From NCBI GenBank assembly GCA_021613535.1, contig CP075493.1:17360001-17424000 (forward strand): 64,000 bases of DNA. Direction: 5' to 3'. The notes below the pieces were generated by a model. The model was not told the DNA's origin. It saw only the letters and a list, made by a program, of their open reading frames with translations, and did not search any database. This document shows, piece after piece, positions 6,565 to 53,930 of this stretch. How positions within the stretch are numbered: position 1 is the first letter of the stretch; every line of letters starts with the position of its first letter. The position numbers were made by a program, and so were the translations under genes. The DNA comes from Adineta vaga (taxonomy: Eukaryota > Animalia > Rotifera).

Positions 6565-6623
6565 TCTTGAAGATGAGTGTGAGTGTGGGTATCTCCTCTT
6601 CTTTCACACCCACACCCTCAAGA
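6565..6623. repeat. Inverted telomere-like palindromic element
   Basis: TCTTGAAGATGAGTGTGAGTGTGGG-spacer-CACACCCACACCCTCAAGA, starting 1 bp after the prpF stop codon. Confidence 0.8.
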
Positions 6624-7530: not shown

Positions 7531-7588
7531 ATGAAGCTCTCAAGACGCGTTTCGACCTTGCTTAAGGGACTCATCAGTTGAGTTTCAT
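7531..7588 (-). ncRNA. Minimal type I hammerhead ribozyme (PLE pLTR type)
   Basis: Minus strand: CUCAA-CUGAUGA-GUCCCUUAAGCAAGGUC-GAAA-CGC-GUC^UUGAG; stem I CUCAA/UUGAG; palindromic stem III ACGCGU; predicted cleavage between 7544 and 7543. Confidence 0.85.
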
Positions 7589-8180: not shown

Positions 8181-8230
8181 GAGACCATGACTAGTTTCGA
8201 CTTATTTCAAAGTCTCATCAGATGGCTATC
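8181..8230 (-). ncRNA. Minimal type I hammerhead ribozyme (PLE pLTR type)
   Basis: Minus strand: GCCAU-CUGAUGA-GACUUUGAAAUAAGUC-GAAA-CUA-GUC^AUGGU; intact core; palindromic stem III ACUAGU; followed by CACACCCTCAAG. Confidence 0.9.
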
Positions 8231-10494: not shown

Positions 10495-12611
10495 GTAATA
10501 TTTGTAGTATTAGTGTCGAATAGCATTGAATTTGGTGGTTTTTTCTTCACTAATAAATGTTGAAGCGATTTGTTAGTGCTTGTACCAATTTTTAACATGA
10601 CATTATTCATTGGTGAACCTGCGGATAGATATAATACTTATTCCATAGTTGACGTAAGTTTTGTTTAAAATCTGACATTGGTCCACTAGAATAAGTAAAA
10701 TCAACACGAATTTCTTTGTTATTCCACTTTTTATATTCCTCTTCTGTTTCATTTGATGAAAATTGATTTTGATCTGAAATTATCTGTTGTAGTTGTCGTT
10801 CTCGTCGTGTTGGTAGTTTGATTAGTTTTGATGCAGTTGCCCATAAATCTCATTATCTAATTGTTCCATTAGTGATAGAGCATTATTTTGTTGAAAGAAC
10901 TTTTTGAAATAATATGAAATAAATTTTGGAGGATAGCCATTCAACAATAACGTTAGTTCAATATTTAATCGCTCTTGGTTGAAATCTTCAACATGTGAAC
11001 AAAGACGTACTGCTCGAAAAAGAGCACCCTTTATTGTATTACGATGAATATGACGTGGATGATCGAAAAGAAATAGTAGAATGTAAGGTGCCGCTGCTGG
11101 ATTGTGAAAGAGAGTAGTTTTCAATTGTCCATGATTATTATATACTGACACATCAAGAAATTGTGCAGTTGATCCAACTGATCGAGTAATACGGATATTT
11201 CCATCTTTGTTATTTGCTTGATCAAGTACTATATTGATTAGATCTGTTGAAAGATTGGTGGTCATGAAAACATCATCAATATATCTATAAAATAAATTCA
11301 CACAAGAAAATCAATGAAAACTTCTTCTTTTACCTTCCATATAATTCATTTTGAACTTTTTGATGTTCAATCAATGATTGTTCCCATTTCAACATATAAA
11401 TATTAGCTAAAGCCATAGTAAATGGTGAACCCATCGCTCCACCACGAATTCGTTTATAATATTTTCCTTCGAAAACAAAAGAATTTGTATCCAAAACTGA
11501 ATTAGATAGCTTCATAAGAGTATCAATTGTCATGCCATTGATTCGACCATTTCTTGCATGTTTATTTAAGAAGTGTTCTAGAGCAAGAAGTGATCCATCT
11601 CGTGGTATCATTGTATACAGATTCGTGACATCGAATGTAATAAAACTTGTTGTTGGTGTTAAACGACCAATATTATGATAGAGTTCTAATCGTCGAATGA
11701 AGTGAATATCATTAATAAATGTTGTTTGTCTAGTTGCTTGATCAAATATTGGACGAAGAACTTGATCAAGAAAATGTGAAACACCAATTGCTGGTGATCG
11801 CATCATTGAAATAATTGGTCTTAAAGGCGTACCAATCTAAAAACAAGAATAAATTGAATGTATTCTAAGATCTTTTCTTTGAAACACTAGTTACTTTGTG
11901 TGGTTTTGGTATAAAATAAAGATGAGGCAGTTCAATTGTTTCAATATTTGGATACATATATTGTTTCCATATGTTGAGATTAATAGCGTTATTCTTTAGC
12001 AATAGATTCAGTAATGTTAAGATCTGTTGACAATGTTCCTTATATGGATTAATACCACTTTCAATTTCTTTATAAGCTTGAGTTTTCTCCATATATGCAA
12101 ATGACTTGTGATAATAACTGTCAGCACTGGCTAAATGAAATACTTTACTTTTATCTGATCTTTGTATAATCATGTGATGTTTATTCCGAATACGTTTGGT
12201 ATTTTTGATCATTTGTTGTTCACGTTGAGCACGAGCTAATAATCTGGATGGTAGTGGTTTTGTATATGATAGATATAATAGATCTTTAATGGAAGCAAAA
12301 AAGTCACTGGCTCGTTGACCATAAGCTGATACACAATTATCATGAAAATCAATTTTAAAAGATTTAATCAATATTTCATATTCTTTTGTAATGATTATAT
12401 CCATTGGTAAGTTTGAAAAATGACTTTGACAGCACGAAACGAAAGGTGGACCATTAGCAAGAAATTCGATGTAATTTGATGAAGGAAATGGAGCTACTTC
12501 AATGATTGGTGATGATAGACGAATATGACTGAGTCTATTTAGAGTATTGCTCCGATGATTGTGCCAGCCAGTTGCTTTTCTTCTGTAACCATCGGAGCGT
12601 TGTCGAAAAAA
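10491..12611 (-). pseudogene. Penelope-like (Athena) reverse transcriptase with two introns
   Basis: RSDKSK, LYFIPKPHK|intron|IGTPLRPIIS, FDVTNLYTMIP, GGAMGSPFTMALANIYM, YGR|intron|YIDDVF, FLDV, HPRHIHRN, LNGYP; C-terminus ends KKKPP with no endonuclease; lesions near 10822 and 10610. Confidence 0.9.
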
Positions 12612-14084
12612 GACACTTTGTGATTAGTAATCAATTGAGCACGTTTAATAATATTTGATTGACGTGTAGAAATAGCATTTAAAATACAAACAAATGAATT
12701 TGGTAATGGAATCTGATTACCGGCGGATTCAACTAACTTTTTCTTTTCACAAGCAATAATATTTGTATGATTTCGCATTATTTGTTCACTTGTAACAATT
12801 TTTAATGACATTAAATCATATTTAAATTGAGCAATAATCTTTTGACGTCGAGATAATATTGTAGCAGATTCATCTTCATGGAGTGTTAGATTTGTAATCA
12901 TTTTTTTGATGTTATCAATTGAATGATCAAGAACATTGAATGAAGTTGGTAATCGTCTTGTGTAGAGACGTTGTTTTAATATGGCCACATGTTCCTCTGA
13001 TTGTTGTTTGTCCATAGTTGCTTGCCAGATGATTTTTGCTGATATAATCTAAATATGAAAACATATTCTTAAAGGATAAAACTGAAGTATAATAATTGAA
13101 ATCTGATCTTCAGACGGTTTTAGATTATAGAATGCTTGAACTAGACGATAATCATTAGCATGAAATTGTAATAATGATTTTTTTCGTTGAAAATCTGCAG
13201 ATAATTTATGTTGACCTTTACGTACAAATGCAGTAATTAAAGTCGATAATCTAACTAACTCGGTAGACTGTTCAATTTCTAATTGTTTATGTTGGTTCAA
13301 TTTCATTTCAGCTTGTTTCAATTGTTCAATAGTAGTTTGTCGATATTTTTCAACGTTCTTTTGTGTTACAAACTGAATTTGATCAAGTCTATTCTGTTTA
13401 ATAAATCGTTTAGATAAGTTCATGGACCATATTCCTGTGGTAACAGCTATTTTATGATAATTCTCCCAAAAATCTTGTTTCAATCTTAAATAGAATAAAT
13501 CATTGATAAGTTGAGCATATTCACGAGCATATTGTAATTTTTCTGTTGTATCTAATAATTGGATTATATGTTCAGCACCTTTTAAAGCCATTGATAATAT
13601 TTTTTTGAAAGTATAATCTGGTGTATTCAAATAATTTGGTTTTACATTTGATGTTGACTTTTTAGAGTTGTCCTTTGGTTGGAATACATTGTCCATTGTA
13701 GTAGTAGTAGCAGCAGCAGCAGCAACAACAGAGCGCAACCGTTTTTCTAATGTTTGTGCAAAGGAAATTGTACTTACTGATGTTGTGACTCCCATCGGTC
13801 GTGTTTCTCGTTTTCGCTTTGTTATCATTGTTCGATCATCTTGTATTTCCTATTTTGTCTTAATACATAAAAGAAAATATTCTTAAACAAATTTATATGA
13901 TACCTGTTGATCGGATTCAATAAAATCTTCCATATTGATATTCAAATCCACTGGATCATTCACTTGTTCATTAACATGTTGACGTGATGGCTCATTATAT
14001 GCATTAATCATCCTTGTTATTGTTTCAGCATTTAATTCTTGTTTTTTTCAGTTTTGCTCTAATTCTTTGTAACTTGCGATTACC
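12539..14084 (-). pseudogene. Athena ORF1 (coiled-coil protein), intron-containing, 5' truncated
   Basis: ORFs 13049-13828 and 12539-13015 are joined by an intron whose donor appears mutated (AT for GT); helical K/Q/E-rich; basic KRKRE patch. Confidence 0.7.
12549..12611 (-). promoter_or_regulatory. Programmed -1 ribosomal frameshift signal (ORF1 to RT)
   Basis: Slippery U UUU UUC (12611-12605), 6-nt spacer, 12-bp stem GCUCCGAUGGUU/AAUCAUCGGAGC; the -1 frame is open into the RT ORF. Confidence 0.85.
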
Positions 14085-18802: not shown

Positions 18803-18856
18803 TCTTGGGGGTGAGGATGAAAGAAGATAAGATTATCCATACCTACACCCACACCC
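18803..18856. repeat. Inverted telomere-like palindromic element (degenerate)
   Basis: TCTTGGGGGTGAGGATG-AAAGAAGATAAGATTAT-CCATACCTACACCCACACCC. Confidence 0.65.
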
Positions 18857-18970
18857 GTTTCAGGGTTAAATTTCATTATTAAAACAAAAGACATCTTAAA
18901 TTTGATTGTAAAGACTTAATTTGACCGTTTCTAGTTTGAATTATGTCTTCTAAATCATTTTAAGACTTAA

Positions 18971-19014
18971 GCTATTTGATGAAGAACTGTAATAGACTCG
19001 AACCCAGTCATGGC
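18971..19014 (+). ncRNA. Degenerate hammerhead ribozyme remnant
   Basis: GCUAU-UUGAUGA-..-CGAA-CCCA-GUC-AUGGC; stem I pairs, but core and stem II are mutated. Confidence 0.5.
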
Positions 19015-19438
19015 AGCTTGTCTCATTGAAAATATTGAGTAGAAAATGATCAAATAATGAATAAATATTAGTTTAATTTTTTATCATTGGTAACATTGAC
19101 GATAAGAACTATGTACATAGAAATGCACTTAAAAATGTTTCATACAAAGTTGCAATCTTATTTGATCGACTCTTTGAGAACATTTTTCTTTATTATACGA
19201 ATGTTTCTAAAAATTATCCATTGTATTAAAAATAGTCAACATATAAAGCATCTTAAGTCAAATTACAAAAGAGTCAAAAGAGATTAAGTATAATGCCAAT
19301 TATTTGTATAGTCTACTTATATTTTAATTGAAATTGAAGAGTTTAACATCAAGATTGTTTTTCTTCTCGAAACTCGTAGTTTAAAATTAAAGATCATCGA
19401 GAAAAATTCTTTCATATTTCACTAGAATTATTCTAAGA

Positions 19439-20376: not shown

Positions 20377-20941
20377 ATGTTGTAAAATATGTCAAATGAG
20401 TCTATGTATCTTTTTGTTTAAGTTGTGTTTGATCTTTTATACAAACACTAGTTGAAATATTGAAACTAAATGTACGAAGAAGCCTTATAAGGGTGTGGGT
20501 GTAATTATTCTATTCATCCTCACCTTTACCAAAGGATAGACAATTACAGTTTCTTGCTTATTTTTGAGTCGAATCGAGTTGATGGCTTTGATGTCTAAGA
20601 TTTAATGTTGATTTTGGAGTTATCTATTTACTCTATCAAAACATGTTATTAGTGTTTTGGAACCGAGAATGCCTTCGAGAACTGCAAGGCGTATCACCAA
20701 TACGCAGTTTAATACATCGACACTCGCCTTTTCCTCTATGATATGGCATCAATCAACGGAATGGAACTGGAATTTCTTTGGAATTAAGAAAAAAAATGCT
20801 CAATGTGATTGATGTCATTTTTAACGAGTATAAATCAAATTTTTGAAAGTATGGCATATATAAAAAATGATCGATCTCCTCATTCTGGATTATCTATTTG
20901 CATTCGCTTTGCGCCTTATCGATTCGTGTCTCGACCATATA

Positions 20942-21012
20942 TGGGCGTGGGTGTGAAAGGCAAGGTCTCTCTTTTATTGCCCACCCACACCCACATTCCC
21001 CCACCCTCAAGA
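20942..21012. repeat. Inverted telomere-like palindromic element
   Basis: TGGGCGTGGGTGTG-spacer-CCCACCCACACCCAC..CCACCCTCAAGA; a weaker copy lies at ~20490-20530. Confidence 0.75.
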
Positions 21013-21658: not shown

Positions 21659-23284
21659 ATGATTTCACAACAAGTAAATGAACATAATTATGCCGATGTT
21701 GAACAAGCACATGACATTCTTATCGTGTGGTTGGACAATTCCATTCACAATAATAATCGAGACTATCATAATACAATTACATAACTTCAACAAGTTGTTC
21801 ACGATATTCACACATTCACTGATAACGATCAGTGTATAGAATTCATTCTCAACACCATCGACACAAAAGTATGTATGATTGTTTCAGGATCAATTGGACA
21901 ACATATCGTGCCGTGCATACATGATATCTCACAAATTGATTCTATTTTCATTTTCTGCGGCAATAAAAATCAACATGAACAATGGGTAAAACCATGGTTC
22001 AGAATAAAAGGTGTTTTTATAGACATCACACACATCTCTCAACAATTACAACAAATAATTCGTCAATATGAACATAATACCATGCCGATGAGTTTTGTGG
22101 CATTTGGAAAACGATTGGATCAATTAGATCCATCATTTATGTATACACAAATCATCAAAGAAATATTATTGACCATCAAATTCGAAGATAAACACATCAA
22201 ACAATTTGTCGATTATTATTGTGATGCATTTGTTAACAATGAAATCGACCGGAAGAAAGTTAAGCAATTGGAATGTGGATATTATCAGAAAACACCCATT
22301 TGGTGGTATACAACAGAGAGATTTTTGTATGGAATGTTGAATCGTGCTTTACGAATGATAGATGGTGAGGTGATTACATTGATCGGTTTCTTTATCAGTG
22401 ATCTTCATCGGCATATTGAAGAATTGCACAAACAACAAATTCAAAACACCTCTTCTGCTGAAATCTTTACAGTTTATCGTGGTCAAGGTTTGACAAAGAG
22501 AGATTTTGATGACATGGTGAAATCGAAAGGTGGACTAATGTCATTCCATAATTTTTTATCAACAAGCAATGATCGCAAGGTCGCCTTGTCTTATGCCGAA
22601 AGTAATAGTGACAAATATGGCCTCATAGGTATCATATTCTCGATGAAAATCGATCCTATTCAATCCACAGCAGCATATGCCTCAGTTGGAGACATCAGTA
22701 GCTTTGAAGAAGAAAATGAAATTCTGTTTTCGATGCATACTGTTTTTCGTATAGATGATATCATTGCAATGGATGGTAATGAGCGACTGTATGAGGTGAA
22801 GTTGCGGTTGACAACTGACAATGATGCAGAATTAAGTGTACTTACTAAGCAAATTCGAGAAGAAAATTTTCCAAATTCCGAAGGATGGTACAGAATGAGT
22901 TTGGTTCTAGCTGATATGAGGCAATGTGACATTGCTGAACGAATATGTCAATTTCTACATGCTCAGACAATAAATCAGAGCAAAAACACACACACTTATA
23001 ATCAACTTGGTTTGATTAAATGTAGTCGAGGAAAATACGATGAGGCCTTAAACCTTTTTAGAAAATCTCTAGAAATGAAACTACAATCACTTCCTTCCAA
23101 TCATCCTGATGTGGCTTTATCCTACAAAAACATCGGTACATTGTATTCCGAAAGGGGTGATTATTTGAATGGTTGTTCATTTTTCGAATATGCTCTCCAA
23201 ATTGGACAACGATTACTACCATCGAGCCATCCTCATCTACATCTCTATAAAACGAACTGTGAAAATGCCAGAAAGAAGTTGTAA
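21659..23284 (+). CDS. RSE-type (ARTC/cholera-toxin-like) ADP-ribosyltransferase with N-terminal receiver-like domain and C-terminal TPRs; premature stop at 21782
   Basis: IVWLD, WWYT..LYGMLNRALR, VYRGQ, FLSTS, EEENEILF, TPR units (YNQLGLI..GKYDEAL, HPDVALSYKNIG); in-frame TAA 21782-21784 upstream of the 469-aa ORF. Confidence 0.85.
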
Positions 23285-23668: not shown

Positions 23669-23721
23669 TTTTGAAGATGTGAGTGTGAGTAAGTCAAAAG
23701 AATAACGACACCCACACCCTC
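23669..23721. repeat. Inverted telomere-like palindromic element (degenerate)
   Basis: TTTTGAAGATGTGAGTGTGAG-spacer-CACCCACACCCTC. Confidence 0.65.
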
Positions 23722-24256
23722 TGTCTGTATATTATGGTCACTGGAAAAAATCTTATTAGAACGAATAAAAGTAATCATATATATGCAAGAAAAGAAAGAG
23801 AACGAGCATGAAAAATATCTATACTATGATTCATCTTATGATATATTCTAATTACGTGCTATAATAGTTGTTATTGTCTCCATATCCAACCATACTGGGA
23901 AAAAAAGAAAAAAGCTCGCATAGACAACCACTTCGTCATTACTTGTATTTCAAGTTTATTATCCAGTACAAAATGGTTTTTTCCAATTTAGTTAATCGCT
24001 CCGAGACTATCGCCGTATATATTACGGCTTGTAAACCTTCATATTTATTAAACTCAATTGTTTTGATGTTTTGTTTTCTTTTTCTATTTCAAAGTTTTTT
24101 TTATCTGCATCGTTACAATAAGAACAAATATTATAATTACAATAGTTAATATTCTTCAGATTTTATAACGGATTCTGACGTTACAACATCAGAAGTAAAG
24201 ATCAATTTACTGTATACGCGAACTTATTGCAAGACGTCTCATCATCGCTGTAAACA

Positions 24257-27960: not shown

Positions 27961-28022
27961 TTTTGAGGTGTGGATCTGGGTCTGAATTAGACTTTACTCT
28001 TAAACCTCACCCACACCCTCAA
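27961..28022. repeat. Inverted telomere-like palindromic element
   Basis: TTTTGAGGTGTGGATCTGGG-spacer-CCTCACCCACACCCTCAA. Confidence 0.7.
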
Positions 28023-28371
28023 TATTTGCATACGATGAAAAATTGAAATGTACACGTAACAAGAAGAGTCACCTGTTTTTTTCTCAATTCTTTGTTCTCA
28101 TACAATGAATCACTACGCTTTTTATATTGATTTATTCTCCACTCATATCGTTACTATTTATTCAAATCTGTGAATGAAACATACAAGATATCTTATTGCC
28201 CGATTCGATATTTTTTCAGTATTTATTCTTTCATATATATATGCGTTCCAAGTCTGATTACATTGATTCGAAGTGAAACTTGATGAGTTCTATCACATAC
28301 AATCACAACATTTTTATTTCACACTTACACCCTTTTTTAAGTTAAAAACTTCTTGTTTATATTTTCGAATA

Positions 28372-30922: not shown

Positions 30923-31003
30923 TTGAGGATGTGAGTGTGTGTAATACTCTTTTTTCAACCCACACCCTCAAGAATAAGAGAATACTCATACCCATACCCT
31001 CAA
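30923..31003. repeat. Inverted telomere-like palindromic element with an extra C-rich arm
   Basis: TTGAGGATGTGAGTGTGTG-spacer-CCCACACCCTCAAGA, then CATACCCATACCCTCAA. Confidence 0.75.
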
Positions 31004-32024: not shown

Positions 32025-32753
32025 CGTTATGGTATGCTTAATTTTGATGATGAAATAATAATAATAAGTTTATTCTTCTTAGTTTTATACCCCAAAAATA
32101 CGAAAAATATTTCTTATTTGTTTCATCTCAATAAAATATTCTATCATTAAGATAGACGAAAAAAAAGGTATGAATCTATTCATCCATGAATTAATCAAAA
32201 TAAAGGAAAAAAATCATTCTTTTCATGATCATCGATCATATACACAAAATGTTTTCATAAAGCAATTATTTATAATCATTGAAATGTCAACATAAATAAA
32301 ATAGAATGGTTTGATGAAAGAAAAAAACATCGTTGAATATGAAAATCATTCATCTGAAACAGAAGTGACAATTATATTCAGGGATTAAGATTTACTGAAT
32401 AATTTAACTTTATTTATTTATTTCACGAATCTTTTCATCAATTCAATACTGTAATATCAGAAAAGTAAACTAAATTCAAATGTAAATGAGAATTAATTGA
32501 CTTTTTTTGATATTTTGTTCTATCTTATTCAAGTTTTAGATACAATAATATAAACAAGTAACGTTCGTCCATAGACTCGCTCAACTCTTTCTCGTAGACA
32601 ATTCTCTACAAAAATAGGAATAACAAAGTCTTATCCTGAAAAATCGATTTCTATCAGTCTATGTGACTTTCTCCACCCAATCACGCCATCCACCTATAAT
32701 CTGAGAAAATCAGACTCTTATTCTAGTTCTTCACATCGAAATACCTCTAGAAA

Positions 32754-32806
32754 TGGGTGTGGGTTAGGAGAAAGCCTGATCCACACCCACACTCACACCC
32801 TCAAGA
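32754..32806. repeat. Inverted telomere-like palindromic element
   Basis: TGGGTGTGGGTTAGG-spacer-CCACACCCACACTCACACCCTCAAGA. Confidence 0.75.
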
Positions 32807-33165: not shown

Positions 33166-33245
33166 TCTTGAGGGTGTGAGTTTGGTGGATGTAGATGTGA
33201 GTGAAGAACATATAGCCACACTCCACCCCACACCCACCCTCAAGA
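33166..33245. repeat. Inverted telomere-like palindromic element
   Basis: TCTTGAGGGTGTGAG..TAGATGTGAGTGAAGAACATATAG..CCACACCCACCCTCAAGA; a weaker copy lies at ~33094-33146. Confidence 0.85.
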
Positions 33246-33968: not shown

Positions 33969-34029
33969 TTAGGGCGCGGGTGTGTGTTTACATGTTTTTC
34001 TTAACCACACTTACACCCCACCCTCAAGA
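33969..34029. repeat. Inverted telomere-like palindromic element
   Basis: TTAGGGCGCGGGTGTGTG-TTTACATGTTTTTCTTAA-CCACACTTACACCCCACCCTCAAGA. Confidence 0.75.
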
Positions 34030-39375: not shown

Positions 39376-39675
39376 ATCAATATCATATATAAACTGATGA
39401 TCATCTTATATTATCTGGAGAATTAAGTTATGGATTTGATAGGGTGACATTTATATGTAAATATGCTACAATTCCACTTAATCTGTAGAATACTATCAAG
39501 TGCCTAAATATTCTGTTCATCGAGCATTAAAACATTTCCTATTCTTCGTTGATTAATATACGTATAAAACATGTCCACACGGTTTTCTTTTATTTTCATC
39601 ATACAAATAAATAACGTTTAAAAAAATAGAAAACGAAACTTTACTCGTTCTATCGTATACTTAACTTTAAAAAGA

Positions 39676-39796
39676 TGGGTGTGGGTGAATGTTTTCTGGG
39701 CTGCTTCATTCGCCCACACCCTCAAGTTTCCGTATTTTTCCGACTAGAGGGTGTGAGGGTGAATTATGAAAGAAAACAGCGTCACCCTTGCACTCC
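39676..39796. repeat. Two adjacent inverted telomere-like elements
   Basis: TGGGTGTGGGTG..CGCCCACACCCTCAAG (39676-39726) and GAGGGTGTGAGGGTG..CACCCTTGCACTCC (39747-39796). Confidence 0.7.
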
Positions 39797-39961: not shown

Positions 39962-41161
39962 ATGACGACGGCAAGTAGTAAAAGACAATGTTTTATTTGT
40001 TACAAAGATAAAATCGTTTATCATTGTGAAGGATGTGAAAAAGATTTTTGTCTTAATCATATAACTGAACATCGTCAAAAACTTCGTGTAGAATTAAATG
40101 AAATGAAAATTGATCGTGATATATTTCAACAAGCAATTCGTCAAGAACGACAAAAACCAGAAAATGAGGTTTTAATTGAACAAATTAATCGATGGGAAGA
40201 AAAGTCCATTCTCAAAATAAAACAAACAGCAAAATAATGTCGAGAAATATTAATAAAATATCCTAATAATCAATTATTAATAATTGAAAGAAATTTTAAT
40301 GAATTAACTGAACAAATGAAACAATTTCAACAAAAAATTAATTTAATGAAATTGATTTAAATCAATTGAGAAATCAATTAACACATCTAACTAAAACAAC
40401 TTATTCAACCATTGAATATTTCTATTCAACATAATATATTACCATCAGCATTTCTTAATGAAATTTCAGTTATTTCATTTGGTAAGTGTAAACAAATAAA
40501 CTGATAAGTAATGTCATGATTATCAATACTATTTTTCCTCAAACTATAATCAAAATATAAACACGTTTTTCGAAGTTTTTCAATTCTTTTAAAGATTTTT
40601 CCATGTACTCAAAGCATTGACATAGTTCATTGAAGAATTCTAAAAGATTGATAGGCATCGTAATCTCAACTACTTGTACTTTCAATTGATTTGATTCATA
40701 AAAAATATTTTTCAATTTACTTTTTTCTGAACAATTAAATCTGAATAAATTTTCGATTTTAAGCACAAATCAAATGGAATCAAGAAGGAATTACTGTTAT
40801 TGGAAAAAATGGAAAAGGACAACAATTAAATCAAGTTAATTCTCCTAATGGAATATTTATTGATAATCATAAAACAACTTATATTACTGATCGTAATAAT
40901 CATCGTATTATTCAATGGAAATGTAATGAAAAAGAAGGAGATTGTATTGCAGGAGGATATGGAAAAGGAAATGAAATGTTTCAATTGAATTGTCCATCGG
41001 ATATTCTTATTGATCAAGAAAACAATTATTTAATTATTGCTGATCAAGGAAATAGACGTGTGATACGTTGGACAATTGAACAGAAAAAATCTCAAGAAAT
41101 TCTTCTTTCTAATATTGATTGTTCGAATTTAGCTATGGATGAAAATGGTTTTATTTATTTT
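39962..41161 (+). pseudogene. B-box-like/coiled-coil + NHL-repeat (TRIM-NHL-like) gene, truncated
   Basis: CFIC..HCEGCEKDFCLNHITEHR, coiled coil, NHL repeats (QVNSPNGIFID, QLNCPSDILID); stop at 40235 and a frameshift; cut off mid-NHL by a telomeric tract. Confidence 0.8.
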
Positions 41162-41247
41162 TGAGGGTGTGGGTGTGGGGTGAGGGTGTGGGGTGAGGGT
41201 GTGGGTGTAGATGTGAGGGAAGAACATATACCCACACCCACCCTCAA
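41161..41247. repeat. Inverted telomere-like palindromic element with a long G arm
   Basis: TTGAGGG(TGTGGG/TGAGGG)n..TAGATGTGAGGGAAGAACATATA-CCCACACCCACCCTCAA. Confidence 0.9.
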
Positions 41248-41786
41248 TTTATTACTAAGTTGATAATTCTCACAAAATGTTCAAGTATGTTTTAACTCAT
41301 AAATATTTGTTAAATAGTGTCATTTGTGTCTTTCTATGTCACTGTATTTATCCGAAAAATTCTTAATTCTTTTGCCACTAAAACAGTCGTAATGTACGTA
41401 GAAAAATGACCATAGAATAATATATTCTAACTATTTTATAAGTCACAATTTGAACAGTAAATATTTCACAGATTTGTGATCGAGCATAGATCGCAGTATC
41501 AATACAATCAGACATAATTATTTAACCGTATGAGTTATATCATCGTGAAAGATTATCAAGCATAGAGTCGATTTTCTTCTCGATTTAAATCATGAAATAA
41601 TATCTCATCTCGATGATATGGATGCGAGAATGACGGTTATATTGAAGAGATAACTTGATCCCTCACCCTCACTCCGATTGTTTATGATTTTCTGACTGTT
41701 TCTCTTTCATTTCGTAAAGCTCTATAAATATTTTTATTATAAAAATTATAGATATTATCATCCAAATATCTCGTTTGAGAAAAGCA

Positions 41787-41905
41787 TCTTGAGGGTGTGG
41801 GTGAGGGTGTGGGTGTGGGTGTGGGTGGGTGCGGGTGTGGGTGTGGGCGTATATTCTTCCCTCCCGGCCTCGCCCACACCCTCACCCACACCCACACCCT
41901 CAAGA
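41787..41905. repeat. Inverted telomere-like palindromic element (best-preserved copy)
   Basis: TCTTGAGGGTGTGGGTGAGGG(TGTGGG)n-CGTATATTCTTCCCTC..-CCCACACCCTCACCCACACCCACACCCTCAAGA. Confidence 0.92.
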
Positions 41906-41926
41906 TCAGCATCCCTACCGAAACAG

Positions 41927-41972
41927 AGCCATCTGATGAGACCCTTTAGCAAGGTCGAAATCGGTCATGGTT
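41927..41972 (+). ncRNA. Minimal type I hammerhead ribozyme (solo pLTR-like)
   Basis: AGCCAU-CUGAUGA-GACCCUUUAGCAAGGUC-GAAA-UCG-GUC^AUGGUU; intact core; predicted cleavage after 41966. Confidence 0.88.
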
Positions 41973-42336
41973 GCTATACTCAGGCACAACCACAGCCTCA
42001 CCCTCCACACCCTTAAATGAGAGTAATAACATGCTGCCATACGTTTCTTCTGTTTTCGGAAGATCCTCTATTGAGATTTTTACAAAGAAAGTAGGCGAAT
42101 CTTTTATTCAAACTTAATTAAGCCTGTCCAGCAGTTGATCAAACAGAATGACAATGTACTATCCTACGCATTCGAATATCAATCGTTCATACTACCTAGA
42201 GAGCGTAAAAGTGAGGCTATGCTCTAAAAATAGATTCAGTTCTAGGAATGTTCATTACGCTACATAAAGTTTCATTGTCATATTGTAATATAATAGCATC
42301 ATACAAAATCGGTTTGTTTCTATGAGAACTTGTTTT

Positions 42337-43823: not shown

Positions 43824-45750
43824 CTATAAAGGCGAATCAGGACAAGTTCTATCAAACTGAGTATCAACTTTACCAAGACAAATCTTGACGAGTTTCTCAT
43901 CAATGTAATCGAAAACATCTTGATATTTCATGGTTACTAAAATTGGTGGATCCCCACCAAGTGCAGTGGCCCATGGTTGATGGAGTGCAACTTGCCCACA
44001 ATAAACAATGATTGGCACATTCACACAAATCTTTCTGCATTCATCCGCAAATTGTTGTCCACCTTCTGCGCCGTTTGTAATGATAACACATTTGATATTT
44101 CCTGATGTCGCTTTACGTTTAAAAAGTTTTAATGCATCGTCTGACGTTCTAATGGCATATATATTAAAATGATATGTATATTTTAAACGTTCAAGTAATT
44201 CTACATTTCGGGCATCGGTAATTTGTGAATTCCGCCATAATACAAATTTATTCTCAAGACGAAGTCCAACTATATAGAGTGGTAGTATCTAACGTTTGTC
44301 TTTGATAACGAACTCTTCTTCGTATTTCTCGTTTATTGATTGAATTGGTTTTTTCGAATCTGGATTTACTGTTATGTAATGGCTATTGTAGCTAGGATGC
44401 AATGGTTTGTTAAAAAAGGACATATCAGTGACATGTAATGAGTTTCCTAATGATACTATATTACATAGGAGATAGGTAGTGACAGGATTTCGATTTGCTA
44501 AATTAGCATAAAACGCTGCATATTTTGGGGAGCTTGCAAAGTACATCCCACTGCCGTACCATCCACCAGTAATGCCACTGAAACGAAAATTATCCTCGAA
44601 TATACCGTTGACATTTCTAATGTCACGTGTACCATGAAATAAAATTCTTTCATTTTGATTTCTCAACATTGATGAATACTGTTTATATTCAAGAGTTAGT
44701 TGTTCATTTGATACCATGACCATACTGCTAATCACATATTCTACTTCAGAGTCTTGAAATGAACGTAGAATTATAGTTGATAATTGGCGGCTTTTTTCTT
44801 GTAAGAATTTCCAAGTATCAGGTTCAATTACAGCCGGTCGTTCATTGAGCTCCAGAAATATGTCAATATCCTCGGGTAGAAGAATTTCTCCGTTCGATAT
44901 TTTTTCAAAATTTTTGATTTCGCCGTGAATGTTGGGGATAATTTCAAAACTTTTGGCAGTCGTGACCGGTAGCGTTTTTAAATAATTAATTACTTTGCTA
45001 CTTTTGTCTTTAATAATTATTGTAAATTTTGCTGCTATCTTTCGTAGCCTTTCTTTGGCCGTTAAAATCGACTTTTTGAACGTTACTTTTATATTTGTAC
45101 TGCCTTCACTAGCATCCAAAATGATAAGATCGTTTTTATCTACTTCCAAATCGTCAGCCAAATGCTGTAAAAGTGATTGCCAGTTAAATTCATTTTGTTT
45201 TACTGGTATAGTTAGACTTATACTAGGTAAGTCATTAATGATTGAGTGGTTAAAAATAGGCATCGACACGAGCACTGAATGTTTACTAACTTCAACGTAC
45301 TCCGTTTTGGTTCCATTATCAAGTGCCAATTTATGTGAAGCTATGTTAGCACATGTTTGTCTTATATGATCGGGAAACAAGTTAGTAATATTCACTGATG
45401 GTGAAATATTCAATATATCTTCAGCTCTAACCTCTTCTGTAGATGTTAATGAAATATGTTGTCCAATATGTGAAGCAGTTTGAAGTAAATATGATATCTT
45501 TGTACATAATTCCGTTATATTGGTCAATGTTAACGTGTGAAGATTAGTACTTTGGATTGTCTGATGACTTTCCACACGTTGACCATTCATGACAATGTAA
45601 TAGTGTTCAGATGAATCGAGACCTTCTTTTGCACATATAGATGAAATCATTTCTTCGATCGTCGTGTAAGAATACACGAGCACTTCCGATATGGTAGAGG
45701 TGGCACGGATTCGTACGGCCACTTTGTAAGTATGTTCTAATGCTATTGTA
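43824..45750 (-). pseudogene. Ubiquitin-like + PARP (ARTD, H-Y-E) catalytic + receiver-like C-terminal domain; premature TAG at 44289-44291
   Basis: TIEEMISSICAKEGL..NGQRV (Ubl); LFHGT, GWYGSGMYFASSPKYA, YEEEFVIKDKR*ILPLYIV (PARP); the frame continues to CVIITNG..VPIIVYCG. Confidence 0.8.
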
Positions 45751-45755
45751 GAAAG

Positions 45756-46358
45756 CAGAGCTGCGCAAATACTAATACCAATTGTACTGTGAAATTTATT
45801 ATAAAACATGCATATCGAATACACATATGTATTCTCATATACTGTCATGTACTGTCATGTATCGATCTACTTTAGGTGTGAAAAAGTTAGGATCGGTTAG
45901 CTTGTACTACGATGTATTCTCATTTTAATCATTTTGCTCGATTCCACTGTAAATACTATAACCACATGACACAAATATTCTCATTTTATTCATTTTGCTC
46001 GATTCGAACACAGATGCTATAAATACTACACAATACAAACATTGTCATTTTACTTATCTTGCTCGGTTCGAATACAGACACTCCTCATTGTCCAACCTAA
46101 AGCAGATACATATAAGACAGTACACGACAGTACAAGGTAACCGATTCTAACTTTTTCAGACTTAAAGTAGCTCAGTACATGACAATACATCAGAATACAT
46201 GACAGTACAAGCTAACCTATTCTAGGTTTTTCAGACCCAAAGTAGATCAAAACATCAGAATACATAACAGTACAAAGCTATTGACTACATCATCATCTCA
46301 TAGATAGAATTCCTAACAAAATCACAGTACAATTTGTACTCGTATTTGCGCAGCCCTC
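45756..46358. mobile_element. hAT-type MITE with 8-bp TSD GTAGAAAG
   Basis: ~35-bp imperfect TIRs CAGAGCTGCGCAAATAC..GTACTGTGA / TCACAGTAC..GTATTTGCGCAGCCCTC; TSD at 45748-45755 and 46359-46366; internal direct and inverted subrepeats. Confidence 0.85.
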
Positions 46359-47660
46359 GTAGAAAGGCAATAACTGTTAAGTATTTAACTGATCAAGTCG
46401 AAGACAAAAATAGTAGTAGACAAAACGATTTTGGCGTTTGCAATAAAAATCAATATTGTCTTGACGAAATTATGTAACACATCGTCTCGGAGAATGCCTG
46501 AACGTATGTGACTGAGAGTGGGTAATCAATTCAAAACCTTCGTCTGGTAGTGTCCGCATTCCGTGAAATCCCCACTCTTGAGGAATTCTAGCTAGCCGAA
46601 ACTTTGATAAATATCATGAGCGGAGCTAGGCATAACTCAACACCAAACTTAACCCAAGCCATTCGGGAGTTTGGGTTTGGGTTAGAGACTCAAGGTTGAT
46701 TAATAAATAATGTTTCAGTTGGCGTTGGTTGCATACGTATATGAAACGTACAAGTCTTTTTCTGTTTGTTTTCATATACGGAAAAATTATTTGCATATAT
46801 ATATATATATGGCAATTGAGAAGAAGACTCAGACCCAAACTCATCAGATCAAACTCACGAAATCGAAACAGTTTGGATTTGGATCATGTGTAAGCAGAAC
46901 GCATATTTCTCCACAAAGAATCAGTTTCAGGAAATTGACGAATTGCACTGAATCTAAGAGAATGAAGGAATTGGAAGAACTCATGGCGCGGACCTTAATC
47001 AAGGGACGTCGGCATCTTGAGGATGAAGGATGTGGACGAGGATCAGTCTCAATTTCATCACAAGTGACAGTGCTTATAAAATTTGGTGTAGTCGAGGATG
47101 GCATAGCCGTCTATGCGTCTGATTCTTAGTCAGATATCAGAAGGTTCAATACCTTCCCTTGGCTCGTCGGGTGGCGGTGATAATGGGAGAATGGAAGGAA
47201 GAAAAAATATAGTTCGTACGAAGAATAAACAAAGAATCACATGGACATGGTTATACGGCCTCGCCAGTTTGTTTGTTTGTTTTCTCCTCTTTGTAACTCC
47301 TTCTCCACTATGTTATCATCATTGTCTTTTCGTAAGCGTCCTCTAAAAATTGTACTGCCATTGTACTAACAAAAACTGACAAAAACAAATCTTGGACGGA
47401 ACAAAATAAATACCGCACAATTAAAAAAAATTGGTGTGGTTCGGATGTCACTTTTGCTCTGATTTTCAGAGAATGAACTGTGGGGTATCATTAACAGTGC
47501 ATTTTCAAGCTCGAACTGGTAAACCAGATCTTGACTTTCGTGTCCAAGATTGCTAAATTTGTGAAGTTCATGAATTTCTTGGGTTCCGTGAGTTCCTCAA
47601 GAGTTCAAATTGCGCGAAATTCAGACATCCCTCGTTATGTGTGGATAGAATATCTCGGTT

Positions 47661-48136: not shown

Positions 48137-48431
48137 TGATGATCGATTGTGTCTATTTTAGAAGTCAGTAACGGAGATGCGCAAGTAACTGCTTGAGTAG
48201 AGAAGAAAGTGAAAAATATTCGAATGTTGTTGTCAGTTGTGAAATGTAAGAATAGTCATCGAAACAGAACACAAAAAGTGTGTTTTTCTTGGCAACGTCT
48301 CTTCAGCATGATAGAAGCGAGCAAACTAAATAAATAGATGAAATGAGATTTAAAACTGTTGTAAAATACAAGAAAAATTTATTCTTTGACGGGTTACGGC
48401 CTGACGAGAGTGTGGTGCGTGAGTACTAGCT

Positions 48432-48474
48432 GCCATAGCGCGTTTCGATCCAGCTGCGGATCTAATCAGATGGC
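48432..48474 (-). ncRNA. Hammerhead ribozyme-like motif with mutated core (probably inactive)
   Basis: GCCAU-CUGAUUA-GAUCCGCAGCUGGAUC-GAAA-CGC-GCU-AUGGC; stems I and II perfect; G8>U and GUC>GCU. Confidence 0.75.
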
Positions 48475-48577
48475 TTTTTATCTTAAATCTGATCAAAATT
48501 CAATCAGTTCTAGCTTAAATAAGTCAAAACTAATCGAACCCTAATCAAATTCAAAGATTAGAAGTATTTGTAATTTT

Positions 48578-48652
48578 TTGAGGGTGTGGGTGTGGGTGTG
48601 GGTGTGGGTGTGGGTTTTACATCTTATTCTTAACCACATCCACACCCTCAAG
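48578..48652. repeat. Inverted telomere-like palindromic element
   Basis: TTGAGGG(TGTGGG)5-TTTTACATCTTATTCTTAA-CCACATCCACACCCTCAAG. Confidence 0.9.
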
Positions 48653-48942
48653 TTTTTTACCCTAATACTCTATCAGTCTCCAAAAACAGTCATTTTTCAT
48701 TTCGTGCTCTCGTTTCGTATGTAGCTTGAGAATTCGATTTCTCGGAAATAAAGGCACGAGGGCACGAATCCTTTTGGGGTTTTTCATATCTCATCGAGGT
48801 CTATCCACGGCCAAAAGATGGAGTTTAAGAGGCCTGGACACCAGGGTATGTGAAAAGAATAACGACATTCTCACATAAATCCTTCTCCTCGTGTTCACTA
48901 TCTTTTTTTCGAAATTTTTTGTTTTATACAAATTCAAAGGCA

Positions 48943-49686
48943 ATGTCAATAACAAATCGTTATAGTGATATTTCTCCAACTGAACGGCTTTCACCTGTTT
49001 ATGGTTTTCAAAGTCAAAAGGTTGGATTACTGGAAGAAGCATTAAAAGCAATTGAACCACAAATAGATCGTTTACAAGATTATATAAAAACTGCTAAAAA
49101 ATATTGTCATTATCCATCAGAACATGATTTAACACATGACGAATCAGCTTCAATTTATATTTATACAATGGAATGGGGCGAAACAAGTTTATATCGTCTT
49201 TTAAATAAAACACTAAGAAATGAAAATAGAGAATTAATTAAAATTTGGTTTCCATATTTGAAATTATTCGATTCAGCATTGAACAAATTACCAACAGTAC
49301 GAGAAGTTGTATGGCGTGGTGTTTCCAATGATATTGGAAAACATTTTACAAAAGATCAATCTGTAACATGGTGGACTGTAAATTCATGCTCATCATCCGT
49401 TAATATTATTGAAAATTTCCTTAAAAATAATAAAAAAACAACAATGTTTTTAATCGAAGCAGTTAATGGAAAAAAAATCAGTGGGTATACTGCATTTGAA
49501 AATGAAGATGAAGTGGTTTTAAAAATAGGAACGGAATTTCGTGTGAAATCAAATGCATTAAATCATCCAAATGGTTCATATGTTGTTCATTTAATTGAGA
49601 TTGGTAATGATCAGAATCCTTCACCACCACCATCAAAACCACGTAAGTTTATTTTGATTTCTTTATTTTATATCTATTTAAACTAA
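48943..49686 (+). CDS. RSE-type (ARTC) NAD:arginine ADP-ribosyltransferase domain protein
   Basis: LTHDESASIYIYTMEW..SLYRLLNKTLR, VWRGV, NSCSS, ENEDEVVL; splice donor near 49642; downstream exons unclear. Confidence 0.85.
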   Translation: MSITNRYSDISPTERLSPVYGFQSQKVGLLEEALKAIEPQIDRLQDYIKTAKKYCHYPSEHDLTHDESASIYIYTMEWGETSLYRLLNKTLRNENRELIKIWFPYLKLFDSALNKLPTVREVVWRGVSNDIGKHFTKDQSVTWWTVNSCSSSVNIIENFLKNNKKTTMFLIEAVNGKKISGYTAFENEDEVVLKIGTEFRVKSNALNHPNGSYVVHLIEIGNDQNPSPPPSKPRKFILISLFYIYLN

Positions 49687-50956
49687 TTTAAAATAACTTC
49701 TTAATGTTTTCCAGTATGAGAAGAAAGTGTACCTAACTAATGATAGATGATCTAGAAGTGAAACAAAGAGAAAGGAAAAAATGAACAATCAATTAACGAA
49801 ATATCATGATAAAAAATAATTAAAATGTTTTTTTTTATGACATCAAACAAGACTTATGAAATACGTAAATGTATCAAAAATTATTCTAAGCATATTTTCT
49901 AATCAACTCATTTTTTTCAACATCAAATGATTTGTTACCGACTTTTTGAGAAATCTTATAGAATTTATTGAAAATAAAACGATGAAAATTCCTAAATGAA
50001 ATATAATGAACTTTTGTTTGGTTATCTTACTCATAATCATCTGATCAGTAACTCATCGTACATATAATGTCTATTCTTCGCAAGTTTATCAGTATTCCAT
50101 CTTCTAATCTTGATGTCACATAAACTATCATCACTGTCATATATGACATATAAATTCTTCCATTTTTTGATATAGCTGTACCAAAAATATCAATAACTCC
50201 GCAGCCAAAGTCGACATCAGAAATGGCAATACACCAGCTACTTAACAGTTGGATTCTACGTGAAGATATTCGTATGAGCCAATATCGTAATGTTATTCGA
50301 TTATATAAAGTATCAAATATTCCAGAATCATTCTACAAGTATTACATGAATGAATTCCACATGTTAGCTAATATCATAGAACAGATTATCGATGCTGACA
50401 AGCACCTGAAAGACTTGCTTCAAAAAAATGATTCAGAATTTTTTAAATATTATAAAATGGCGAGTTCTGACATACTACGCGAATGGGATGCGTCGAAACG
50501 ATGAAATGAGCCTGTTAACCCATGAATGATTTTTTATTTCACTACAAATCTCATCAGATGATTTGAAGTTTGTCGTTTTTTGTTCAAATAATCAAATTCT
50601 AAATAAATAAAATTCAATTACAAACAAAGGAATGGCATTTGCAGAAAAAATAGGGATGGGTGCAGTTTTATTGAATAAATATATCATACCCAAACCCACC
50701 CCTTGTTTTACACGAATTGTTTTTTGAATGGCAACGCATACATTTAGACCATTCAGTTGTTGCTAGAAGAACTTTAAGTATAAAATCTAATAAAATACAA
50801 TGAATTTGAAGAACAATTCGATGTTTTTTTTATTGAAATTTGTGAAAGAATTAAAAACCAGAATTTATATTGATAAACATTCACTACTCAATCCAATCAG
50901 AAATATATCTGTTACAATGACAATACTCAGTTGAATAGTGAATGATTGTCGATGAA

Positions 50957-51969
50957 CTATACTATATTTGATTGAATATCATATACAAGTATTAGATCAA
51001 GTAAAAATATATAAGTTGAAGTTGAATATTGACATCGTTCACTAGAATATTCTTCTGTACATGAACAATCAAATTTTGTTAAATTCTTACGATCATTATA
51101 TAGAACACATAATCCATTGTGTTGACATGGATTATTTGATAATTGACATATTGGATGTTTCAAATAACAACGTGAACCAAGTTTATTTAATTGACAAATA
51201 CATATTGATCGACTAAGACAAATTGCATTTTTCTCACAATTGCATTGATGAGTAATCTTACAATAAGTACCAGAATATCCTTCATCACAATGACAGAAAA
51301 AGGTGGAATTTTTATTGATATATTTCATACATTGACCATGTGCTCCGCATAAAAGAGTGCATGTTACTGGTTTAGTTGGTTCTTGAGGAATATGCAAGAG
51401 AGTAGCAATTCGATTAACAAGTAAAAATTGAAATGGTATAGATAAATGCCAACTACCCAAATAATTTAATAGTTTTTTATCATATAAATTAATTAATATT
51501 GTATAATTATTTGATAAAGATTTTGGTCGTAGAGGATAAAGTAAATATAAATTATATTTTGTAGTACAATCACGATTAGGTACATAAAGAATTTGTTCAT
51601 GATAAGGTGTAATAGATCCTTATCTATCGATAAACATAATTATTATTTGAAATATGAGAGAAGATGATAAAATTTTATCCATTTGAAATTGAAGTGTTAA
51701 ACTAATACGTTGATTTTGTCATTGACATCGTGATCCGAAATAATTCGGTGGACATAAACATTGTTTTGTTCTATTTCGACCTTGCAATGTAAGAATATAT
51801 TTTGATTCGTCTTGGAAACTGTACGTATAGATATATTCGTTGATGAGTTTGGATAATAACCAAATTGTTTCCTAGTTAAAAATCGAATCGAAGGTCTAAT
51901 CCTATATCCTTGTAAACGACAAAGATGTGTGTTGCTTTCTAGGTTTTTAATAAATATAATAGGAAGTAA
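50957..51969 (-). pseudogene. Internal fragment of an EGF-repeat GPCR-family gene (paralog of 34162-39375)
   Basis: SWHLSIPFQFLLVNRIA, CGAHGQC, CHCDEGYSGTYC, NPCQHNGLC; begins at the palindrome at 51970 with no start. Confidence 0.7.
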
Positions 51970-52037
51970 TTGAGGGTGTGGTGTGGGTGTGGGTGAATAA
52001 GAGATACTTTGACCCACACCCACCCACACCCTCACCC
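51970..52037. repeat. Inverted telomere-like palindromic element
   Basis: TTGAGGGTGTGGTGTGGGTGTGGGTG-AATAAGAGATACTTTGA-CCCACACCCACCCACACCCTCACCC; weaker copies at ~50652-50703 and ~53220-53281. Confidence 0.88.
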
Positions 52038-53930
52038 GAGTGATTCTAGTTATGCGCTCGCTTTTTCCGTTCACTTGAAAAAGTTCAAGGTTCTGAATCT
52101 GTTATCAATACCATATTGTTGTTACCTGGATTATGTTCATCTGAGGCCTTCAAATTCAAAGAAATTACTTTATGAATGAATTCCAACATTTTTCACCACC
52201 TAACACACTTAAAATGACTTTGATAAAGTGAAATAATACAAAGAAGACTTGGCTGAAAGTCACCAAGGTCTTCCTGCTGACCTCCACTGTGATGATTTTT
52301 GATAGACCACGCTTTAGCGCTGATGGAGCTACGCTTTTCTTTATTCCTTCCTTTCATATATCGCATCGTTCTCACACAAAACAGTCACTTATATACCCTT
52401 CCGAAAGAGAAAAGAACAACGGATTATAAGAAGTGAATACAGAATAAGGAGAAAGTGCAAAATTAGGACAAATATAAGCATATGACGTTTTTTCACTGAT
52501 TCGTTACACTCATCCTGATGATGCCAACCATATTGTGACCTTTTTCTAGACCTAGAAAAGCATCATAGAAAGTTTGGTGATCTTAGCTGTTACAGAAACT
52601 GGATGGATATCGAACAGGTAGACAGAGAGAAACATGCTACTTTATATGTAGAGATATTGACAAAATTCTCTCTAAGTCAGCAATGGTACAACCCATTGAG
52701 CTCATCTTCGAATTCGACTGAGACATAGATGAAACAATTATGGGTAAAAAACTTCAGCTCAATCGGATGCGGATATGAAGAGTTATCGAATAAACGGCCG
52801 GACGACCGGATATACTGACCGATTTTAGTAGTGTACTCACTTTTTGAGTACACAAAAATAAAACTTAAAAATTCACATATCCCGTCAAATAACTACTCAG
52901 CTAATTGTAAATCACACAGCTCTATTTCTAACACTACTATAGCCTAACATACCTACAACACGCCGCATTATCCTTTGATATTATCCAACAACCCATAGCA
53001 TTCCAAAAATGTAATACAACACCATAGTCAGTATTCCCGCAGTCACCTTAACTCTCACAGAGATGATACCCCATTGACACCCTTCCCTACACCCTCACTG
53101 AGATCGAATAATTGAATAGTTGAATTCAACTTTCGAGTTATATATTTATGACTTTTTCTAGCAGTCCAAGGTACAGTCAGCATTCTTCTTAGGAACCACA
53201 TCTCAGTAGCCTGAGGCTCTGAGTGTGAGTGGAGTTAAAATGGAGTGACAGCCAACTATTCATCTACATCCACACCTTCAACTTGGCATCTCACACAGAA
53301 GCTTGAGACGTTTGAGGTATATGGATATCGGCATTCTATCATTATACTGACACTCTCAATGTCAGAGAAAAAAATTTTTTTTTGGAATATGTCGACAATT
53401 GTTTCGTATTTTAATTTAGTAAACTTTTTTAAAATTCTCTGAAACAGAAAAAATTTTAATTTCATGATTCTTCGAAGCATTTTTGAAATAAAAATTTTTA
53501 AACATCTGCAACATATAGAAACGTTTTCTGTTCCGTTAATAAATCTTTCATATTTTTATTTATTGAATAAATATTGAAATGGGAGAGAAACAAAAAGAAG
53601 TTGTAGCAGCGAACTGAGACTTTAAACCATTTAGTTTTATCATTTTCAAAATTTTGGTTGTGCCATTAATAGAGAAATTCTTTGACAGAGTGTTTTATTT
53701 TTTTTCTCTTTCATACGTTCAGATAAGCTAGTTAGTTAAATTCATAGAAGATAAAATTATGTTTTTTTTCTGCGTGATTTAACTTTCTAATGAAGATTAC
53801 TAGTTATCCAAGTGTAACATGACGAGCTCTATTCAATCATATGGATAGTTTTAAACTCAACTTTGTACTCTTACCTATGTTCTTTTCTTTCTTTCAAATT
53901 TTAATTCATGTTTTCCTTTTATTTATAGAA

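Follow-up and report, generated by a model that had tools for sequence, protein, structure and literature searches.

A minimal hammerhead ribozyme beside a telomeric palindrome in Adineta vaga, probably a 5'-truncated Athena/Terminon 3' end

Athena and Terminon are endonuclease-deficient Penelope-like retroelements (PLEs) of bdelloid rotifers, whose 3' ends combine a hammerhead with reverse-complement telomeric repeats that are thought to pair with G-rich overhangs (PMC6431247, PMC8557442). Published work on Athena reports this 3' module, 5' ends cut short by brief stretches of telomeric repeats, and priming that takes place at telomeres or at double-strand breaks (PMC6431247, PMC8557442, PMC3846280). 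Exposed termini or double-strand breaks prime the synthesis (PMC3846280), and the truncated 5' ends of Athena copies then receive telomeric repeats (PMC3846280, PMC6431247). Minimal hammerheads of the PLE type are expected to act as dimers and have low activity in vitro (PMC4209133). A chromosome-level assembly of the A. vaga genome has been published (PMC8494291).

The window analyzed here is a stretch of 64 kb of A. vaga DNA, in which we studied a hammerhead motif; chromosome 1 (length 18,146,847) extends about 745 kb further to the right of it. Genome-wide searches were performed in one haploid A. vaga assembly of 100.8 Mb, comprising 6 contigs of 13.9-20.4 Mb with TGTGGG-type repeats. The locus consists of the following elements.

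41786-41847, plus strand: G-rich arm of a telomeric palindrome, opening with ATCTTGAGGG and continuing with about 10 TGTGGG/TGAGGG units
41848-41872, plus strand: asymmetric palindrome spacer of 25 nt, whose core (41849-41863) shares homology with that of a dispersed hairpin family
41873-41906, plus strand: C-rich arm, ending in CCCTCAAGAT at 41897-41906
41907-41926, plus strand: leader of 20 nt between the palindrome and the ribozyme
41927-41972, plus strand: minimal type I hammerhead (own-genome covariance model, 62.9 bits, E 7e-15)
41927-41932 and 41967-41972, plus strand: stem I, 6 bp
41933-41939, plus strand: CUGAUGA core, from reading of the sequence
41940-41943 and 41953-41956, plus strand: helix II, 4 bp, with a G10.1-C11.1 closing pair and a 9-nt loop
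41957-41960, plus strand: GAAA, likewise from reading of the sequence
41961-41964, plus strand: loop III, UCGG, 4 nt, on a 1-bp helix III
41965 and 41966, plus strand: U16.1 and C17, respectively, the GUC triplet being 41964-41966
41966/41967, plus strand: self-cleavage site after GUC, predicted from the hammerhead consensus
41973-41983, plus strand: linker of 11 nt from stem I to the C-rich tail, of the family-typical form GCT....CTCA (52 tails compared)
41984-42019, plus strand: degenerate reverse-complement telomeric tail, with C-rich repeats to about 42013

The motif at 41927-41972 is a genuine member of the A. vaga hammerhead family. The CUGANGA ... GAAA core and a U-H cleavage triplet are all present, helices I and II are paired, G10.1-C11.1 closes helix II, and helix I is open. 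With a covariance model built from 22 hammerheads found elsewhere in the A. vaga genome, excluding the target and the other copies in the window, this motif obtained the top score in the 64-kb window over the full model length. The helices of the family covary in the 22-sequence alignment, where 90.1% of cells are paired versus 75.8% after shuffling and 14-40% in slid controls, and eight of eleven pairs show compensatory changes. Rfam gave no hammerhead match at the gathering score, and the HH9 model gave the motif only 13 bits against a threshold of 52 (E 4.9); the Rfam models rated this hammerhead variant poorly, compared with 62.9 bits from the custom model. In the same scan, the palindrome itself yielded many spurious miRNA-like matches. 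The sub-threshold Rfam scores, as well as the ease with which a loose hammerhead consensus arises by chance (15 matches in the window versus 4.3 expected), would be compatible with a fortuitous match in AT-rich DNA. Such a coincidence is scarcely credible, given the E-value from an independent family model and the presence of every stem together with a family-typical linker and tail, and it is refuted by the helix covariation and the covariance-model score.

A genome-wide search for the hammerhead core with a nearby CACCC pattern gave 95 matches at about 60 loci, versus 0-1 in the reversed control. Sixty of these loci were fetched, and parsing gave 54 distinct sequences, across which stem I and helix II covary. 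Loci with a hammerhead, linker and C-rich tail cluster towards chromosome ends, and the fetched ones share one layout, in which the hammerhead and the 3' strand of its stem I are followed by the GCT....CTCA linker and C-rich telomeric repeats. At the locus under study, the tail (41984-42013) follows the 11-nt linker, and the C-rich arm of the palindrome (41873-41906) lies 20 nt upstream of the ribozyme. This is the arrangement expected from the published Athena model, which predicts that a truncated copy has C-rich repeats on either side on the sense strand, as found on the flanks of 41907-41983. Most statements of the first-pass annotation on this architecture were borne out. The CUGAUGA/GAAA/GUC hammerhead that it placed about 20 bp past the palindrome starts 20 nt after 41906, its cleavage position of 41966/41967 agrees with the GUC ending at 41966 (the predicted site), the C-rich telomere-like repeats it saw on the 3' side are the degenerate tract at 41984-42013, and the ancestry it drew from a minimal type I hammerhead of the Athena/PLE type with reverse-complement telomeric repeats is supported by the presence of all parts of the module. 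The hammerhead had also been called intact, which holds for its complete core and stems but not for loop III, where UCGG is not palindromic as it is in most family members.

Minimal hammerheads of the pLTRs of Penelope-like elements were reportedly also described by Lunse et al. in 2017. In A. vaga, roughly three quarters of the 54 family members have a palindromic loop III (e.g., CGCG, CCGG, CTAG, UCGCGA), the individual counts being 17 for CGCG, 8 for CCGG, 4 each for CTAG, UCGCGA and UCUAGA, and a few others. The UCGG at 41961-41964 thus lacks the palindrome associated with a dimeric active form. It looks like a transition from the CCGG of the closest relative (L044), and a UCGG self-dimer would pair via two G-U wobbles. 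Minimum free energy folding of the monomer and the dimer showed only that stems I and II are able to form and that the mutated loop III is able to mispair with the core. Being a lone minimal hammerhead, the motif probably does not cleave itself in cis; minimal motifs with a 1-bp helix III require a second copy for cleavage (PMC4209133).

Upstream of the unit of about 110 nt, Athena-clade reverse transcriptase (RT) and accessory ORFs are absent, which identifies it as a 5'-truncated fragment and not an element. A six-frame RVT_1 search gave no match in the 64-kb window, and the only RT-like ORFs there (YRYIDDVF) lie on the minus strand about 30 kb from the hammerhead, at 10822-11806, in agreement with the earlier remark that no RT lies within about 27 kb. 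A larger Athena-like remnant occupies 7538-8227 and 10822-13828 on the minus strand and has two different hammerheads 640 nt apart, at 7.5 and 8.2 kb; upstream of them, the RT-motif ORFs in 10822-13828 (YRYIDDVF) are broken into five pieces. Several CACCCTCAAG sites lie between these two hammerheads (7.5-8.2 kb). With respect to an element-encoded origin of the CACCCTCAAG sites, the 596-nt inter-hammerhead segment has no conserved copy elsewhere in the genome, and part of it resembles a 535-bp satellite at the extreme end of chromosome 1 (C1:18.106-18.146 Mb).

The first-pass annotation had further proposed that the locus is a tiny non-autonomous unit mobilised in trans by Athena RT. A dedicated SINE-like element of about 110-230 bp with its own transcription would be expected to carry a complete 3' recognition module, as this unit does; moreover, short hammerhead units recur, and a short tandem hammerhead repeat with a 216-nt period exists elsewhere in the genome (L007). 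However, a whole-genome search with 41900-42060 revealed no second copy with the same boundaries, only similarity in the hammerhead and tail. Against all fetched loci, homology begins at stem I (position 18-27 of the unit), the best alignments showing 81% identity over 93 nt or, within the 37-nt core, 100%, and no copy shares the upstream sequence. A family of several copies with common 5' and 3' ends and different flanks was not found in the one haploid assembly. In 14 short units, pooled from the fetched loci and the solo units of the window and measured by hand, the distance from the upstream telomeric tract to the hammerhead was 12, 15, 20, 54, 55, 88, 96, 104, 107, 113, 116, 150, 176 and 205 nt. 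This 12-205 nt spread of 5' ends points to variable or random 5' truncation and not to a discrete non-autonomous family. Wherever there is sufficient sequence, the upstream part of the units shows homology to longer copies, in their 3' region. The orientation of the hairpin spacer relative to the hammerhead is not fixed either. With its decayed tail and mutated loop III adding to these discrepancies, the locus is quite improbable as a SINE-like element, and the proposal of a unit mobilised in trans was not supported.

Animal type I hammerheads also occur in non-LTR retrozymes, for which PLE/Terminon RTs have been proposed as mobilisers (PMC7761336), and a retrozyme-like unit at this locus would have formed a circular RNA via hammerhead cleavage at both ends. 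Retrozymes consist of tandem units with a hammerhead in each, but the locus has a single hammerhead and no tandem repeat, its nearest same-strand match is a decayed copy 23 kb away, and minimal motifs with a 1-bp helix III cleave only when a second copy is available (PMC4209133). Such an origin is highly improbable. On another chromosome, three hammerhead units follow one another in tandem with a 216-nt period, and the final unit enters a long C-rich telomeric tract (L007 / L074, C3:20276916-20277716); they represent a retrozyme-like tandem array at a chromosome end.

We consider it probable that the locus is an extremely 5'-truncated Athena/Terminon 3' end, which became attached to a DNA end left by an old break and was subsequently sealed by an inverted tract of telomeric repeats. 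The sealing tract belongs to the palindrome, whose arms are 86% complementary over 44 nt. The arms are unequal, with about 10 units in the G-rich arm versus 5 in the C-rich arm, and the order of variant repeats differs, leaving them out of register; the differences in length and variant order fit two separately made tracts better than a snap-back copy. The G-rich arm at 41786-41847 is interpreted as telomeric sequence added de novo to the left-hand DNA end and directed to the right. The spacer at 41848-41872 is also present, in inverted orientation, in 41191-41241, and its core has 69 genome-wide matches versus 8 in the control. The leader at 41907-41926 showed no detectable homology to the other Athena 3' ends among all fetched loci, whose alignments start at unit position 18-27; judging by sequence, it may be either a diverged 3' UTR or filler, an Athena origin not being demonstrable.

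At the outer ends of the palindrome, the C-arm is closed by a motif whose complement opens the G-arm (41786-41906). The 12-mer CACCCTCAAGAT has 1152 copies in the genome versus 2 in the reversed control, which corresponds to about 20% of the 5892 CACCCTCA sites present. Telomeric tracts carry it at their outer ends over the whole length of the chromosomes, beyond the subtelomeres as well as within them (e.g., at 41897-41906). Among the C-rich tract ends in the fetched sequences and the window, CACCCTCA was found in 95 cases versus 28 for CACCCACA, and AGAT comes next in 27 of the 95; CCCTCAA closes 20 of 34 right arms of hairpins and 16 of 56 Athena tails. In the tail of the locus, the terminal 12 nt (42008-42019) agree with the usual motif CACCCTCAAGAT at 8 of 12 positions, and such decay fits an old, neutrally evolving copy. 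Since the motif is about 20 times commoner than hammerhead ends, we interpret it as the signature with which new telomere tracts begin at ends that are not telomeric, with Athena tails landing on motif-started tracts. Alternatively, an Athena-like RNA 3' end may be the common template for the motif.

Palindromes of this type form a dispersed multi-family repeat, of which the window contains about 17 telomere-armed hairpins in 64 kb with several spacer families. Besides the palindrome at 41786-41906, the following were located.

6572-6621: telomere-armed hairpin
18805-18856: telomere-armed hairpin
20487-20530: telomere-armed hairpin
20947-21010: telomere-armed hairpin
23676-23722: telomere-armed hairpin
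27962-28023: telomere-armed hairpin
30924-30971: telomere-armed hairpin
32750-32804: telomere-armed hairpin
33168-33243: telomere-armed hairpin
33978-34027: telomere-armed hairpin
39672-39725: telomere-armed hairpin
41160-41249: telomere-armed hairpin
48577-48651: telomere-armed hairpin
50649-50704: telomere-armed hairpin
51969-52037: telomere-armed hairpin
53220-53282: telomere-armed hairpin

Matching spacers are found in the hairpins starting at 33978 and 48577, in the one starting at 39672 and a hairpin of another locus (L011:544), and in those starting at 33168 and 41160, which match the main family. In the commonest family, the asymmetric core is well conserved and the arms vary in length. 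At one locus on chromosome 3 (L032:1480-1560, C3:1764866 region), the main-family spacer and C-arm abut unique DNA without a G-rich arm and resemble a discrete unit.

The window also contains three decayed solo hammerheads, each with a telomeric hairpin 85-113 nt upstream.

18970-19015, plus strand: decayed solo hammerhead, 22.2 bits, mutated core, decayed tail
48431-48475, minus strand: decayed solo hammerhead, 43.9 bits, mutated core, decayed tail
50518-50563, minus strand: decayed solo hammerhead, 22.7 bits, mutated core, decayed tail

Thus, all solo stubs in the window are sealed upstream by an inverted telomere tract, and a hairpin lies 20-113 nt upstream in the sense direction of four of the six hammerhead hits (P = 3e-5 with randomised placement). 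Genome-wide, about 7 of 60 hammerhead loci, inspected by eye, have a hairpin within 120 nt. Conversely, among 28 hairpin loci fetched by spacer pattern (84.5 kb), hammerheads were found in one only, and the hairpin there is 377 nt away from them. The enrichment is thus one-sided, in that Athena tails receive a cap after truncation and ends with such a cap enter hairpins, whereas hairpins in general need no hammerhead. The first-pass annotation had linked the palindromes to the retroelement machinery and suggested a co-occurrence check in which a lack of enrichment would speak against it. Enrichment was seen, and the link stands for the hammerheads, which lie near hairpins, but does not extend to the hairpins, most of which have no hammerhead. 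It follows from published biology, as telomeric repeats added at truncated Athena 5' ends give the C-rich arm.

We also considered whether hairpin spacers are the 3' self-cleavage products of Athena hammerheads. The two look alike on visual inspection, but such an origin was not supported in shuffle-controlled alignments. Local alignment of 34 spacers with 52 post-cleavage linkers gave a mean score of 15.09 versus 14.92 for dinucleotide shuffles and 15.0 for reversed spacers, with p <= 0.05 in one of the 34. When the arm flanks were added, the means were 20.1 versus 19.0 (Wilcoxon p = 0.016), a weak trend with two of 34 individually significant. An exact whole-genome search for the commonest spacer downstream of a hammerhead gave zero matches.

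To the right of the locus lies unique DNA, which is the 3' flank of a minus-strand NHL-repeat gene, followed by a PARP-domain gene. To the left, 40644-41641 duplicates C1:17465522-17466525 (L011:924-1927), 64 kb away, with 95.5% identity over 1 kb including the hairpin at 41160-41249; the similarity extends as far as 41641, next to which lies another C-rich tract. The neighbourhood is thus a mosaic made up of short segments that meet at telomere-like tracts. Several other genes were observed in the window. ADP-ribosyltransferase (ART/exoenzyme-type) and PARP-domain genes (21875-23284 and 48850-49686 on the plus strand, 44289-45848 on the minus strand) are clustered among the hairpins, and one of the ART/exoenzyme-type genes is fused to TPR repeats. 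A full-length ORF of the PrpF family, of bacterial type (5208-6563, plus strand, E 4e-116), ends just before the hairpin at 6572-6621 and is likely a horizontally acquired gene. Finally, a borderline tRNA-like match with a shortened acceptor stem is located at 47094-47161 on the plus strand (30.1 bits versus a threshold of 29).

The family membership of the ribozyme, the layout of its module, the truncated state of the copy and the statistical association with hairpins were demonstrated, whereas the order of events and the enzymes involved are inferred, as follows. A DNA end would have arisen about 320 bp downstream of the NHL-repeat gene, and an Athena/Terminon RNA would have attached to it via its 3' module, that is, the hammerhead fold and the C-rich repeats complementary to the telomeric G strand. 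Reverse transcription from the chromosomal 3' end would then have copied the tail, the hammerhead and at most 20 nt more, leaving a dead-on-arrival copy. Telomeric repeats may next have joined the truncated end, where they would appear as the C-rich arm on the sense strand and begin with the usual ATCTTGAGGG on the other. Finally, the capped end would have joined head-to-head with another capped end, the source of the G-rich arm and spacer, forming the palindrome and making the site internal. No empty-site paralogue to fix the junctions was found in the genome: the flanking DNA (42020-42333) is unique, and paralogues exist for the coding part of the NHL gene alone (65-73% identity). It should be noted that the conserved families of hairpin spacers are not explained by simple fusion of two capped ends, which weighs against the fusion account.

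A different origin of the palindrome would be a single retrotransposition that produced it together with the hammerhead unit, through self-priming or template switching by an Athena-type RT at an abortive cDNA end; telomeric hairpins in general would then be by-products of retroelements and not of telomerase and end joining. Such an event would account for the hairpin that nearly always lies upstream of solo hammerhead units and for the end motif CACCCTCAAGAT shared by hairpin arms and Athena tails, and PLE reverse transcriptases are reported to self-prime, leaving palindromes at inverted junctions (PMC3846280). The family-1 copy in which spacer and C-arm lie directly on unique DNA without a G-arm (L032) likewise resembles a templated unit. 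On the other hand, the 1152 copies of CACCCTCAAGAT versus about 60 hammerhead ends indicate that the motif is not Athena-specific, the 28 hairpin loci (84.5 kb) lack an adjacent hammerhead, and the unequal, out-of-register arms are unlike a snap-back copy. In addition, the spacers do not resemble post-hammerhead linkers beyond the weak trend obtained with flanks (p = 0.016), and the commonest spacer is never preceded by a hammerhead in the whole genome. Taken together, a single event appears unlikely.

A broader possibility, doubtful at present, is that hairpins and Athena tails are products of one RNA-templated end-healing system. Each new tract would be initiated on an RNA with CACCCUCAAGAU at its 3' end, which it would copy first; the units of hammerhead and tail would represent abortive cDNAs, and hairpins (over 500 per genome) would arise via RT self-priming or cDNA capture of a second healed end. 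If so, a Penelope-like RT would be a routine sealer of double-strand breaks in A. vaga, beside telomerase and end joining.

Read as a truncated and sealed Athena/Terminon 3' end, the locus adds one more fossil to a described process, the capping of DNA ends by Athena/Terminon tails in bdelloid rotifers. Its value is that of a clean minimal example, which consists essentially of a hammerhead and a telomere-complementary tail, the smallest part that is copied. The upstream sealing of every such stub in the window, together with the motif CACCCTCAAGAT shared by stubs and hairpins, offers a handle on which enzyme and RNA template start tracts at breaks, a question that bears on the repair of shattered chromosomes and foreign-DNA uptake in these desiccation-tolerant rotifers.

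The closest described system is the Athena/Terminon 3' end (Gladyshev & Arkhipova 2007; Arkhipova et al. 2017), here compared as it is presented in PMC6431247 and PMC8557442. In common with the ends described there, the locus has telomeric repeats at its truncated 5' end, lies in the subtelomeric part of a chromosome arm, and shows the linker form of about 60 ends in the genome. Unlike them, it keeps only the last 90-110 nt or so, without RT or any other ORF, its tail is degenerate, and its loop III is no longer palindromic. Its 5' cap also differs in being part of a head-to-head telomeric palindrome, an arrangement not described in the literature consulted here. The minimal hammerheads of PLE pLTRs (Cervera & de la Pena 2014, PMC4209133) have the same type I topology, with a 6-bp helix I, a 4-bp helix II closed by G10.1-C11.1, a 1-bp helix III and a 4-nt loop; the locus, however, lies outside any pLTR, has no tandem partner, and its UCGG is not a palindrome. 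Metazoan non-LTR retrozymes (PMC7761336) resemble the locus as small non-coding units with a type I hammerhead and a presumed dependence on PLE-type RT. Retrozymes are tandem repeats with a hammerhead per unit and circular RNAs, whereas the locus is a single copy ending in telomeric repeats.

The human 2q13 site is an ancestral head-to-head telomere fusion. The A. vaga hairpins are similar to such fusions in that G-rich and C-rich tracts meet within the same strand, but they are tiny (tens of nt), number hundreds to a thousand per genome, and possess conserved spacer families and a fixed outer motif.
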